Of a stretch of DNA of 64,000 bases, positions 1,234 through 44,606 are shown piece after piece (positions within the stretch are counted from its first letter, which is position 1; each line of letters opens with the position of its first letter). The notes under the pieces are model-generated. The model was not told the origin of the DNA and searched no databases. It saw only the letters and a list, made by a program, of their open reading frames with translations. The stretch lies in IMG/VR virus record IMGVR_UViG_3300030085_002431, positions 186,001 through 250,000 of that record. One strand, given 5' to 3'. The position numbers and the translations under genes are program-made.

Positions 1234-1785
1234 ATGACAGAACAACCAAAAGAGTGGTTTAGACAAGGATTCGGTTACAGAGAGCAATCTGGTGTCTACA
1301 TTGAAGGTAGAGAAGTTGGATACTCTCTAATAACTGATGAAGGTGTTGGGTATACTTATTACAAAGATGGTGGAAAGGAGGATGTTGTTCTAGAAACTTC
1401 ATTAGAAGTTTGTGGTAGGAGAGTAAAAGATAAAGAACCAGCAAAAGTAATCTATGCAAGAAATGGTGATATTCATTTTGAAGCACCAAATGGTCAGATA
1501 ACATTAAAGGCAAAGAACATAAGATTAGTTTCTCAAGATGGTGATGGTGAAGTTACCATTCAAGCAGGTAAAACCATCGAAATTGATGGTCCAACAGCTA
1601 GAGTCAAAGGAACCAATGTTGACATTACAGGAAAAAATTCTGTAAATATGATTGGAAATTATGTAGAATCTGCTGCTGGTGTGCAGCAATCAAGTGCATC
1701 ACTTGTTGATATTTTTCAAGGTTCTTTTATAGGTCAACTTCTAAATTCTCTCGGAAATCTTAAAAAATTCCTTCAACTTTTCTAA
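1234..1785 (+). CDS. Conserved baseplate-associated protein (gp5 C-terminal beta-helix-like)
   Basis: Repetitive G.I.I.A beta-strand pattern; ATAAATA late promoter at 1207-1213. Confidence 0.5.
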   Translation: MTEQPKEWFRQGFGYREQSGVYIEGREVGYSLITDEGVGYTYYKDGGKEDVVLETSLEVCGRRVKDKEPAKVIYARNGDIHFEAPNGQITLKAKNIRLVSQDGDGEVTIQAGKTIEIDGPTARVKGTNVDITGKNSVNMIGNYVESAAGVQQSSASLVDIFQGSFIGQLLNSLGNLKKFLQLF

Positions 1786-1788
1786 ACT

Positions 1789-2706
1789 ATGCCTGCACTA
1801 GCCTCTATTTCAACAATTGGTGATAAACTAATTGTCGGACAAGTTGATACTTCATTTTTGACTGCTACTGGTAGAGTTACACCAGGAACAGCAGTTCTAA
1901 ATGGACCTGTTTATATTGGTGCATCTCCTCAAATTGGTGTTGCTAGAGCAGCATGTATGATTGGTCCTCCTCTTCCTGGACTGTCAGTTCCTGCTTCACT
2001 TGAAGTTACAGGAGTTGCAAATGTCATTGGTGTTTTCAATGTCATAGCTGTTAGTACATTTACTGGTCTCACAACAAAACTTGGAACAACAATTAAGAAT
2101 GCTCTAAGTCTTAAGAATGGTGTTGACCTGAAAAATGCTGTCAATATTGGTAATGGTGTTTCTATTGATAACGCAAAAGCAGTTGTAAATGGTGCAGAGA
2201 CTGTTGCTGGTGTACTTTCTGCACCAGTTGCTAATATTCCATTGGTTAATGGATATTGTACTGGAAATAAATCAATTGGTTCTTTTGATATTCCTCATTG
2301 GAGAAAAGAAAATACTAGAATTCGTCATATAGTTGCTGAGGGACCAGAACCAGGGATATATGTCCGTGGACGTTTAACAGGAAACAATACAATTGAATTG
2401 CCAGAATATTGGGATGGTCTTGTTGACCCAGAATCAATCACCGTAACTCTTACACCTATTGGTTCTTCTCAAGATTTATTTGTTGATTCAATCCCTTGGG
2501 GAAGAAAGGTTATAATTAAATCTGGAAATGCATCTAATATTGATTGCTTTTATGAAGTTTGGGTAGCACGTTGGTTAGATCCAAGAGACCATAGCAAGAA
2601 ACTCCATGTAACTTATGAAGGAAAAACACCAGATGATTACCCAGGTGATGCCAAAGATTTCTTGGTTGGTGGATGGGACTATGACAGAAGAGAGTCTCAA
2701 TGGTGA
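1789..2706 (+). CDS. Virion structural protein with C-terminal chaperone-like domain
   Basis: FDIPH...H...EGPE...RG...IELPEYW..LV...ITV.LTPIG motif seen at C-termini of phage fibre/spike proteins. Confidence 0.55.
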   Translation: MPALASISTIGDKLIVGQVDTSFLTATGRVTPGTAVLNGPVYIGASPQIGVARAACMIGPPLPGLSVPASLEVTGVANVIGVFNVIAVSTFTGLTTKLGTTIKNALSLKNGVDLKNAVNIGNGVSIDNAKAVVNGAETVAGVLSAPVANIPLVNGYCTGNKSIGSFDIPHWRKENTRIRHIVAEGPEPGIYVRGRLTGNNTIELPEYWDGLVDPESITVTLTPIGSSQDLFVDSIPWGRKVIIKSGNASNIDCFYEVWVARWLDPRDHSKKLHVTYEGKTPDDYPGDAKDFLVGGWDYDRRESQW

Positions 2707-11416: not shown

Positions 11417-11596
11417 ATGATGATTACCCGAAACGCACTCACTGAGCTGCGTGAACTGCATGAAGATGTGGCAGAAAATTTTACTGACACATACTTTCCT
11501 ATCAGTGGAGAAACTTATTGGACTTGCGTTCAAGCACTTGCTGAAGCAAAACTTGCAGAACTGCGTGGAGAATTGAATGAGCTTGTTGAAGATTGA
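11417..11596 (+). CDS. Small hypothetical protein (59 aa, not in ORF track)
   Basis: MMITRNALTELRELHEDV...; directly follows the promoter. Confidence 0.65.
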   Translation: MMITRNALTELRELHEDVAENFTDTYFPISGETYWTCVQALAEAKLAELRGELNELVED

Positions 11597-37369: not shown

Positions 37370-37437
37370 GGACGGTCTGGTAACTGTCCACAGACGTTGC
37401 CAGAGACCCCAACCCATGCTATGATTACTAGGTAATC
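37369..37437 (+). promoter_or_regulatory. Palindrome-linked early promoter (copy 5)
   Basis: AGGACG-N10-TGTCCA, TTGCCA-17-TATGAT, ATTAC-tag-GTAAT. Confidence 0.75.
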
Positions 37438-37453
37438 GAGAGAGGAACGACCA

Positions 37454-37684
37454 ATGCATTTCGTTGAGTTTACTCAATCTTCCGCAATCGCAAAGGTTGC
37501 GTTTGACCATGATAATGGTGAAATTGGTGTTGCTTTTACTGCTGACCCCGACAAGTTTTACTTCTTTGAGTGTGACGATACGGATGGGTTTGTGACTAAA
37601 CTTGAAGAGACAGTGAACAAAAACGAATCACTGGGACGGTTTATCTCCGAATTACGGAAAGACGGAACTCTAGTTTCCGTCTGA
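37454..37684 (+). CDS. KTSC-domain-like small protein
   Basis: SSAI..V.FD......V.F......Y.F...SLGRFI. Confidence 0.55.
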   Translation: MHFVEFTQSSAIAKVAFDHDNGEIGVAFTADPDKFYFFECDDTDGFVTKLEETVNKNESLGRFISELRKDGTLVSV

Positions 37685-37691
37685 CCTAAAC

Positions 37692-37763
37692 GGGACTGTC
37701 GCATATTGGTTAATGCTCACTGCTTATAACGGTGTAAACTGGGTTCAATTCCCAGCAGTCCTA
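37692..37763 (+). tRNA. tRNA-Ile(UAU)
   Basis: Acceptor GGGACTG/CAGTCCT; anticodon stem CACTG/CGGTG with loop CTTATAA; T loop GTTCAATTC. Confidence 0.85.
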
Positions 37764-37766
37764 CTG

Positions 37767-37940
37767 AGGAACTTGAGACGTTCCCGACCAAAGGTGCCCA
37801 GCGGTTCGGATATACCGAAACCCTGTAGTTGGGAATCAGCCCCCTTTGGATATTTGCGGAGGACCTGCATCTTACTCCGTTACAAACTGTCAGTATGTTG
37901 GGTCTAGTGCCCCATAGCAAGCATACGGATAAGTGTAATG
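37767..37940 (+). ncRNA. Large structured RNA between two tRNAs (possibly manA motif)
   Basis: Pairings GGAAC/GTTCC, CCAAAGG/CCTTTGG, CCCAGC/GTTGGG, GGTTCGG/CCGAAACC, CTTACTCCGT/ACGGATAAG, GTATGTTG/CAAGCATAC; family identity from memory only. Confidence 0.6.
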
Positions 37941-37943
37941 TAT

Positions 37944-38027
37944 GGGAGTGTGGCGGAATCGGTAGACGCACCAGACTTAAAATCTGTTGGGAGTAATCCC
38001 GTGGGGGTTCAAGTCCCCCCACTCCTA
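37944..38027 (+). tRNA. tRNA-Leu(UAA)
   Basis: GGGAGTG/CACTCCT; loop CTTAAAA; long variable arm. Confidence 0.92.
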
Positions 38028-38042
38028 CTATTTCATTTTATT

Positions 38043-38624
38043 ATGATTACAACTGAACAATTCAAAGAAATCTGCGAGACTCAAGTTGATTGGAATAAAG
38101 TCTTTGGCACTTTCCGAGATGTTTCTGAAGACCCTGGACTGAAGAGTAACTCTGATAACTTCTTCCGTTCAAAAGCATTTGAACTTGCTGTTTGTTGCTG
38201 TTCCCCATTCAAATATGTGGATGAGGATGGTGTAGACTTTCACATGGAATATAATGGTGAAACTATTCGCATCGAACAGAAGGCACTGAAGGGTTTCTTT
38301 TATGGGAATGGTAAGTGTAAACAAGTTAAGATGAAAAACTATCGGGGTGATGTCAGTGAGGCAACATTCAACCGATACAAAACAGAAAACAAATTTGACT
38401 TCGTGATGATTGTTGATTACAAGAATCATAAAGTTGCCATCGCATCAAGAGAGACAGCACAGAAGTGTTATGTCAGTAAAGGTGATGGAGTGTTCTCCAT
38501 GTTCACACCAAGTGATATGACTATTTTGAATCTAGACTTAGATTACTTTTCTTTTCCATCTTCTCAAATTCGTCTATCTGATGTGATAAATGATACTATA
38601 GTTAATTGGATTAGAGAAAGATGA
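38043..38624 (+). CDS. Putative PD-(D/E)xK nuclease-like protein
   Basis: E...GVDF....IRIEQK pattern; true start follows tRNA-Leu. Confidence 0.45.
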   Translation: MITTEQFKEICETQVDWNKVFGTFRDVSEDPGLKSNSDNFFRSKAFELAVCCCSPFKYVDEDGVDFHMEYNGETIRIEQKALKGFFYGNGKCKQVKMKNYRGDVSEATFNRYKTENKFDFVMIVDYKNHKVAIASRETAQKCYVSKGDGVFSMFTPSDMTILNLDLDYFSFPSSQIRLSDVINDTIVNWIRER

Positions 38625-41673: not shown

Positions 41674-41702
41674 TTGACAGCACTAGCATTTTATGTTATA
41701 CT
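41674..41702 (+). promoter_or_regulatory. sigma70-type promoter
   Basis: TTGACA-17-TATACT with extended TG. Confidence 0.85.
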
Positions 41703-41708
41703 GTCTAG

Positions 41709-41779
41709 GTCAAGCAAATTACTTGACTGCGGTATTCCCCTTTGATGGATTCAGGAATAGCGGCGATAGGAATCCATCA
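41709..41779 (+). ncRNA. Hairpin plus H-type pseudoknot in the leader of tRNA-Val/Pro
   Basis: GTCAAG/CTTGAC; TATTCC/GGAATA crossed with TGATGGATTC/GAATCCATCA. Confidence 0.55.
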
Positions 41780-41782
41780 TAT

Positions 41783-43846: not shown

Positions 43847-44302
43847 ATGAAAATAGAAGTAGAAGGTTCTCCTGTTCTCAGAAAGAAATCAAAAAGAGTT
43901 TCAAATATAAACAACGATATCCGAAAGTTTTGTGCTGAGATGGCACAGACAATGAGAGATGCAAAGGGTATTGGAATTTCAGCACCCCAGGTGGGGGTAT
44001 CTAAACGCATCATAATTGTTAATGATGGAGGAAATGATTGGGTATTGATTAACCCAGAAATTATTTGGGATGATGGTAAAAGAGTTTCTTTTAATGAGGG
44101 TTGTTTAAGTGTTCCTGGTGAATATGCAGATATTCTCAGACCAGACAGGATTAGGGTGAAATATAGAGAACTATCTGGGAGACCTCAGACTGTAGACTTA
44201 GACGGTTTATTGTCAAGGATAGTGCAACATGAAATTGACCACTTAAATGGCATTCTTTTCACAGATTACTTGACTGATAGAGGAAGTGCGATTACTATAT
44301 AA
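43847..44302 (+). CDS. def: Peptide deformylase
   Basis: GIGISAPQVG, EGCLS, QHEIDHLNG; short C-terminus. Confidence 0.95.
   Translation: MKIEVEGSPVLRKKSKRVSNINNDIRKFCAEMAQTMRDAKGIGISAPQVGVSKRIIIVNDGGNDWVLINPEIIWDDGKRVSFNEGCLSVPGEYADILRPDRIRVKYRELSGRPQTVDLDGLLSRIVQHEIDHLNGILFTDYLTDRGSAITI
44270..44298 (+). promoter_or_regulatory. sigma70-type promoter for tmRNA (inside def 3' end)
   Basis: TTGACT-17-TACTAT. Confidence 0.7.
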
Positions 44303-44304
44303 AG

Positions 44305-44545
44305 TGTTCAAGAGGTTGCGAAGTCTGTTGTTTTGGACAGGGGTTCGATTCCCCTCACCTCCATTCATGGGGGTGCCATGGTTTCGACAGGGCAAAAAGG
44401 TCGTAATTGTTGACGGGACATAAACATAGATGCAAACACATCTGAAACCGCAGCAAATAACATTGTTGCATTCTCCCGCAGCACCGTTGCTGCCTGAATG
44501 GGGGATGGGGGATAAGTCTTCCTTCTAATCCAATAGACTCTTGGG
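44305..44545 (+). ncRNA. ssrA: Circularly permuted (two-piece) tmRNA, cyanobacterial type
   Basis: T arm GGGGTTCGATTCCCC plus CACCTCCA (to 44363) precedes the 5' piece GGGGGTG..GGTTTCGAC (from 44369); G3:U70; tag ORF 44453-44497 ANNIVAFSRSTVAA*. Confidence 0.9.
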
Positions 44546-44565
44546 GGTGAGATGCCCCTCTTTTT
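44543..44565 (+). terminator. Intrinsic terminator after tmRNA
   Basis: GGGGGT-gaga-TGCCCCT followed by CTTTTT. Confidence 0.7.
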
Positions 44566-44606
44566 GTATAAATACTCCAGAGTTAATTAAACTTAGGATA
44601 CTTTTT

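Follow-up and report, generated by a model that had tools for sequence, protein, structure and literature searches.

Phage T4 forms two small stable RNAs, RNAC (species 1) and RNAD (species 2), which are annotated immediately after tRNA-Arg in its tRNA cluster, are expressed (Northern blot in PMC9697503) and still await a functional explanation (PMC3014915). Among cyanophage RNAs, the manA motif (Rfam RF01745) is a multi-stem orphan RNA of about 170 nt with a proposed pseudoknot, found in T4-like cyanophages and marine metagenomes, where it is located in 5' UTRs of protein genes for mannose/fructose metabolism, nucleotide synthesis, IbpA (ibpA) and photosynthesis (PMC2864571). ROOL and GOLLD are orphan structured RNAs which often lie next to tRNA genes in phage genomes, are several-fold larger and occur in other host groups. 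In addition, tRNA-like small RNAs such as mascRNA and tmRNA precursors use the tRNA-processing machinery (RNase P and RNase Z) to define their ends. Genome papers on cyanophages list only Rfam families as non-coding RNAs, i.e., CfrI, PhotoRC-II, wcaG, manA and glnA. The RNA gene described here is missed by all of these families, and GenBank records leave it unannotated or cover it with spurious hypothetical proteins.

Genomic context

The window, i.e., the whole 64-kb stretch of DNA analysed, originates from a cyanomyovirus-like phage and encodes baseplate and tail-fibre proteins, a CobS-like protein, 2OG-Fe(II) oxygenases and eleven tRNA/tmRNA genes. At the DNA level it has almost no relative in GenBank, the best record covering 2 % of a 20-kb query. 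ARAGORN and Rfam place tRNA-Ile (anticodon UAU) at 37692-37763/4 (+) (Rfam tRNA, 57.7 bits) and tRNA-Leu (anticodon UAA) at 37944-38028 (+) (58.6 bits). The 179 nt in between (37765-37943, +) are enriched in GC (0.51-0.52 versus 0.33-0.42 in the flanks), with the first helix starting 4 nt after the tRNA-Ile discriminator and the last helix ending 3 nt before tRNA-Leu. A sequence-only reading had proposed a structured RNA of about 175 nt with at least six helices at this position, closely abutting both tRNAs. This observation is confirmed, all six complementary pairs being present in the sequence, even though one helix had to be replaced and several were added (see below).

The tRNA region contains further features. 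A phage-encoded, circularly permuted (two-piece, cyanobacterial-type) tmRNA is located at 44274-44588 (+) (Rfam cyano_tmRNA, 133.6 bits; ARAGORN tag peptide ANTSETAANNIVAFSRSTVAA); a 92 % identical stretch in the S-CAM1 and S-CAM3 records is annotated as hypothetical protein or sits under a tRNA-Arg label. The gap between tRNA-Ser and tRNA-Val (41675-41782, +) holds a near-consensus promoter (TTGACA-N17-TATACT) followed by hairpins, suggesting transcription of the tRNA cluster in several units; this gap has only weak similarity elsewhere (S-SKS1 and a marine single-cell virus). A promoter-like site (TTGCCA-17-TATGAT with an extended -10 TG) at 37397-37425 (+) lies upstream of the small ORF 37454-37684 preceding tRNA-Ile and may drive the unit ORF, tRNA-Ile, RNA and tRNA-Leu, but is not above chance in the promoter scan.

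Search for known RNA families

The sequence-only reading considered that the element could be manA and argued that its context would then favour a trans-acting over a cis-regulatory role. This interpretation is only partly supported: the context agrees with release of a free RNA by tRNA processing, but the identification as manA fails, and the argument on the mode of action of manA therefore does not apply. At gathering thresholds, Rfam 15 yields only tRNAs and the tmRNA in the 64-kb window. With permissive filters and E<=10 on 37600-38100, nothing meaningful overlaps the element and manA does not appear, and the same holds at E<=0.5 for 11 homologous loci. In one of these loci wcaG was found elsewhere, so the search does detect cyanophage motifs; in S-N03, a wcaG RNA (70.1 bits, 2464-2561 (+) of the fetched locus) lies about 800 nt downstream of the family member. 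Weak YrlA and mascRNA hits lie on true tRNAs, and no hit to ROOL, GOLLD or tmRNA models overlaps the element. ARAGORN and the Rfam tRNA model call only the flanking genes, and no cloverleaf or T arm is present. The core sequences are absent from the first 200 of the 438 supplementary alignment files of the paper defining manA, a subset that may or may not include manA.sto. Also contrasting the 5' UTR location of manA, the element is followed within 1-4 nt by a tRNA in almost all copies.

A riboswitch or other cis-regulatory metabolite sensor is likewise very unlikely. Size (about 170 nt), occurrence in cyanophages, multiple stems, a pseudoknot and invariant internal loops would agree with such a role, but no riboswitch model matches and no ORF, Shine-Dalgarno sequence or terminator lies downstream to be regulated. 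Full-text literature searches for the core sequences and for cyanophage tRNA-cluster RNAs revealed no description of such an RNA; Ocean-VI, a marine motif not in Rfam, is a different, AT-rich element.

Distribution and conserved genomic position

The element belongs to an apparently undescribed family. By blastn it was found once per record in 32 GenBank phage records, comprising (i) T4-like Kyanoviridae (S-T4, S-PRM1, S-SM2, S-CAM9, S-N03 and relatives, S-8S55, Syn1, S-RIM44), (ii) the unrelated Aurunvirus myoviruses S-TIM5, S-TIM54, S-TIM61 and S-TIM66, and (iii) the siphovirus S-SKS1, as well as Sf-CH5 and Sf-CH8, the records of which carry no taxonomy below Viruses. All listed hosts are marine Synechococcus. 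Pattern scans extended the family by 96 IMG/VR contigs (first 3'-core pattern), 47 further members (looser 3'-core pattern), about 20 more through the first hairpin, and more than 120 marine metagenome contigs including TARA and GOS; three of these scans provide lower bounds only. In total, at least 150 IMG/VR contigs and well over 250 marine cyanophage and metagenome sequences carry the element. A covariance model (R1) built from 61 sequences scores the copy in the window at 156.8 bits (E 1.6e-33) as the only hit in 64 kb and confirms 97 and 59 copies in two sets of fetched loci. Of three pattern hits in cellular genomes, two are chance matches in GC-rich coding DNA, while the third, an 878-nt MAG contig carrying tRNAs, is a true member and probably phage-derived.

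Nearly every copy lies on the strand of the tRNAs. Flanking pairs include Met/Leu, Asn/Thr, Asn/Val, Arg/Asn, Ile/Leu, Thr/Asn, Arg/Gly, Gly/Asn and Asn/Leu, i.e., the element is not tied to one tRNA. In three collections it ends 1-4 nt before a same-strand tRNA (45 of 47 members from the looser scan); the tail is 2-4 nt in the first viral scan and 1-4 nt in the second, and amounts to 3 nt (UAU, 37941-37943) in the window. Spacers between tRNAs in the same loci are 0-4 nt. On the 5' side, either a tRNA lies 2-4 nt upstream or, in the eight loci examined without a preceding tRNA, a consensus sigma-70 promoter ends 8-9 nt before hairpin 1, placed such that transcription would start at this hairpin. 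At least five different promoter sequences are involved: TTGACA-17-TATAAT occurs in three different sequence contexts (one scored 12/12), the others being TTGACA-17-TATTCT and TTGCAA-17-TATAAT. Together with conserved G.U pairs (e.g., one G.U in 77 of 77 sequences), promoter position and tRNA borders fix the strand and both boundaries and show a discrete RNA gene. Exceptions without a downstream tRNA are the S-TIM5 group, where petE follows, and S-N03; hence RNase P cannot be the universal 3'-end maker.

This arrangement could also indicate a cis-acting leader controlling or assisting transcription, folding or the timing of RNase P processing of the following tRNA, without function as a free RNA. 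The tRNA starting 1-4 nt after the last helix is indeed the most constant feature of the context, and promoter-driven copies form element-plus-tRNA units. However, the downstream tRNA can be Leu, Thr, Val, Asn, Gly, Pro, Arg or Ala, other tRNAs in the same clusters have no such leader, the S-TIM5-like phages have petE instead, there is no terminator or alternative pairing with the tRNA, and the near-invariant internal loops suggest recognition by an outside partner. A cis-acting leader is therefore regarded as unlikely, though it remains the strongest of the rival explanations.

The element is not coding, since indels are not in multiples of three and no ORF is conserved, including those overlapping it in the window. 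Hypothetical protein CDSs drawn across the RNA and adjacent tRNAs in GenBank records of S-TIM5, S-TIM54, S-SM2, Syn1 and S-RIM44 lie on differing strands (1464-1748 (-) in fetched loci L003/L004, 1433-1639 (+) in L005, 1397-1579 (+) in L009 and 1463-1579 (+) in L010) and are almost certainly annotation artefacts.

A selfish or mobile insertion targeting tRNA clusters, or a decaying pseudo-tRNA without function of its own, appears very unlikely. Occurrence between many different tRNA pairs and in unrelated phage lineages, mosaic modules and decayed copies would agree with such an origin. Among the latter, fetched locus L213 (about 11486-11560) retains P1 and part of P2 fused to the P8/P7 3' strand by an internal deletion, whereas in L311 and L115 the 5' half of a tRNA-Leu is fused to hairpin 2 of a type-B RNA. 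By contrast, there is one copy per genome, no terminal repeats or target duplications were noticed on reading the aligned ends, dedicated consensus promoters are present, and strand-specific compensatory changes and G.U pairs show selection on the RNA fold.

Secondary structure

Single-sequence folding energy does not distinguish the element from shuffles (z = -1.2 for the whole element, -0.7 for the opposite strand, -2.2 for the 3' domain alone) and is weak evidence. Comparative evidence is decisive: on a MAFFT alignment of 61 sequences, 96.6 % of cells pair and 16 pairs show changes on both sides, which was reached by none of 500 shuffles, while slid controls pair at 31-45 %. Covariance-model alignments yielded 97.8 % (78 distinct sequences) and 92.6 % (51 distinct sequences). 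Covariation supports eight helices and a pseudoknot, although for the pseudoknot this support comes from the type-B sequences only (see below).

In the window, the type-A 5' domain starts with hairpin P1 (37768-37784), formed by GGAAC (37768-72) and GUUCC (37780-84) with an almost invariant 7-nt loop, UUGAGAC (37773-79), and supported by the covarying pairs GGGAC/GUCCC and GGAAG/CUUCC. P2 (37788-37849) pairs CCAAAGG (37788-94) with CCUUUGG (37843-49), shows compensatory changes and paired deletions (CCA-AGG/CCUU-GG), and encloses P3 (37797-37833). In P3, CCCAGC (37797-802) pairs with GUUGGG (37828-33), and in its inner hairpin P3a GGUUCGG (37803-09) pairs with CCGAAACC (37815-22). This hairpin is the variable module of the family, with at least seven length classes (9-38 nt) and the compensatory sets CCCAGC/GUUGGG, CUCAUC/GGUGAG and CCUAUC/UGAUAG for P3 as well as GGUUCGG/CCGAAACC, GGCUCAG/CUGAAGCC and GGCGCGG/CCGUUGCC for P3a. 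Hairpin P4 (37855-37869; UGCGG at 37855-59 with CUGCA at 37865-69, loop AGGAC with a conserved GG) is the best-covarying helix, all five pairs showing changes on both sides (16-36 cells each for the inner four).

The linker J4/5 (UCUUACUC, 37870-37877) leads to the conserved 3' domain (37878-37940), a single long hairpin of 63 nt which is almost invariant. Its 7-bp closing helix P5 pairs CGUUACA (37878-84) with UGUAAUG (37934-40) and is 99-100 % paired, with the variants CGGUGCA/UGUACCG, CGGUGUA/UGCAUCG, CACUACA/UGUAGUG and CGUUAUA/UGUAACG. P6 pairs UGUC (37888-91) with GAUA (37928-31), with rare variants G.U to A-U and C-G to U.G; P7 pairs UAUGUU (37894-99) with AGCAUA (37920-25) and swaps U-A with A-U (28-32 cells); P8 pairs GGGU (37900-03) with GCCC (37909-12). 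P5-P8 are preferred in the minimum-free-energy fold, also of the domain alone, and were recovered independently by RNAalifold on six sequences with a different 5' domain (type B). Some members (fourteen fetched loci, that of S-N03 among them) carry an extra hairpin, which in those read lies in the 3' bulge between P8 and P7 (e.g., ...GUCCUCAAUCAGGCGCUUGGUUGAGAA... and ...AGGUGUUAUCGACGCC...). This second variable module lengthens the tRNA-to-tRNA spacer to about 190-250 nt.

Of the six helices of the sequence-only reading, GGAAC/GTTCC, CCAAAGG/CCTTTGG, CCCAGC/GTTGGG and GGTTCGG/CCGAAACC are supported by compensatory changes and GTATG/CATAC by the U-A/A-U swap. The sixth, CTTACTCCGT/ACGGATAAG (tested as CTTACTCC/GGATAAG), has 14 unpaired cells and no double change, is incompatible with the better supported P5 and P6, and is replaced by these. 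P4, P8 and the pseudoknot had been missed.

About a quarter of the members, including Sf-CH5 and S-SKS1, have a type-B 5' domain, in which two other hairpins replace P1-P3. Retained are (i) a P4-like hairpin with GG in its loop, (ii) the linker U(A/G)CUCC, (iii) the 3' hairpin, and (iv) a GAG in the loop of the first hairpin. In 42 distinct type-B sequences, loop GAG(U/C) pairs with linker (A/G)CUC in 168 of 168 cells; the variable pair is C-G in 24, U-A in 11 and U-G in 7 cases without any C-A combination, and one independent A-U to G-C change occurs at another position. In type A, including the window, GAG of the P1 loop (37775-77) and CUC of the linker (37875-77) are invariant, such that the pseudoknot is inferred there from three invariant pairs; it would stack on P5 and place the 3' end of the RNA at the junction. 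The type-A hairpin never occurs in phage context without the 3' domain, apart from the one internally deleted copy; the two domains are therefore parts of one RNA rather than two genes.

Alternative pseudoknots were rejected. For pairing of P1-loop GAGAC with linker GUCUU, the variants GUCCU and GACUU and loop variants are not compensated on reading the alignments, and pairing of P4-loop GGA with a discriminator plus CCA (T-box-like) or with UCC of the linker shows no covariation. For the linker as an anti-Shine-Dalgarno-like seed, no complementary GGAGUAAG sites and no further occurrence of the complement GGAGTAAG were found elsewhere in the window. No partner or target of the RNA was found.

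Proposed biogenesis and function

The most likely explanation (probability about 0.6) is a gene for a compact non-coding RNA, with the pseudoknot inferred in the present copy, that is transcribed on the tRNA strand either inside a tRNA operon, as here, or from its own sigma-70 promoter. RNase P cleavage at the 5' end of the tRNA following 1-4 nt downstream would set its 3' end, while its 5' end would result from 3' processing of the preceding tRNA or from transcription initiation; since the cyanophage tRNAs here lack encoded CCA, an RNase Z-type cut is expected. The product would be about 135-200 nt long (179-180 nt here), with a swappable 5' domain tied by the loop-linker pseudoknot to the base of the almost invariant 3' hairpin. 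It most likely accumulates as a stable RNA and acts in trans, using the invariant internal loops of the 3' hairpin to bind a conserved protein or RNA of the host or phage, plausibly in translation or tRNA metabolism. The comparative data directly establish the family, its structure, its strand and its boundaries, whereas processing by RNase P and RNase Z, accumulation and stability, trans action and the nature of the partner are inferred from sequence context. Conservation of the internal loops of P5-P8 and of the linker across phage lineages sharing almost nothing else suggests recognition by one conserved partner.

A special case of trans action would be a tRNA mimic or decoy titrating a host tRNA-targeting nuclease, a modification enzyme or a defence system. 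The 7-bp P5 is followed by one mostly-U base plus 1-3 nt, the same layout as a tRNA followed by another tRNA, the 7-nt loop on the 5-bp stem of P1 has the Y-U-NNN-R-N pattern, and the element is carried with phage tRNAs; P5 and P1 would imitate the acceptor and anticodon arms. Nevertheless, this possibility is unlikely, since tRNA and tRNA-like models do not recognise the element, a T arm is lacking, CCA is encoded in the tails of only two phages (S-SM2 and S-8S55), the linker 5' of P5 is engaged in the pseudoknot such that P5 is not a free acceptor end, and type-B RNAs lack the P1-type loop.

More speculatively, and rather unlikely on present evidence, the RNA may be the first widely distributed, structurally defined member of a class of phage tRNA-operon passenger RNAs with a dedicated function in host takeover, e.g., a pseudoknotted decoy or regulator binding a conserved Synechococcus factor of tRNA maturation, translation or anti-phage defence, its end being deliberately manufactured by RNase P. 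If so, it would offer a tractable way into the 50-year-old question of what RNAs such as T4 RNAC and RNAD do.

Irrespective of function, the family is abundant in ocean metagenomes and shared by unrelated phage lineages infecting marine Synechococcus, and its almost invariant core implies a conserved molecular partner. It provides a new orphan fold with good covariation, a natural case of an RNA whose 3' end would be made by RNase P cleavage of a neighbouring tRNA, and a comparative handle on the unexplained small RNAs of phage tRNA clusters. Its inclusion in RNA family databases should prevent phage annotation from calling ORFs across it.

Comparison with known RNAs

Compared to manA, size, multi-stem architecture and occurrence in T4-like cyanophages and marine metagenomes are similar, but the covariance model does not match and the RNA sits between tRNAs, or between a promoter and a tRNA. 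ROOL and GOLLD share the orphan status and the proximity to tRNA genes, but differ in size and host groups. With mascRNA and tmRNA precursors, the RNA shares a 7-bp terminal helix and the (here inferred) use of the tRNA-processing machinery, but has neither cloverleaf nor T loop.

The closest analogues, not homologues, are T4 RNAC and RNAD. In both cases, non-coding RNAs of about 120-180 nt are placed in a myovirus tRNA cluster on the tRNA strand, separated from the neighbouring tRNA or RNA by 1-6 nt. Model R1 finds no hit in the T4 region at E<=1, and no homology in sequence or structure is detectable. As read from the sequence, RNAC ends in a tRNA-like T arm plus acceptor-like stem and RNAD ends in ...CACCA, whereas the cyanophage RNA ends in a 7-bp helix with, in the first viral scan, a 2-4 nt tail, has no T arm and, apart from the CCA/CCAC tails of S-SM2 and S-8S55, no encoded CCA. 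It is thus a separate family within a loosely defined and poorly understood group of phage tRNA-cluster RNAs, differing from the T4 RNAs also by its pseudoknot and by its position upstream of a tRNA rather than at the end of the cluster.
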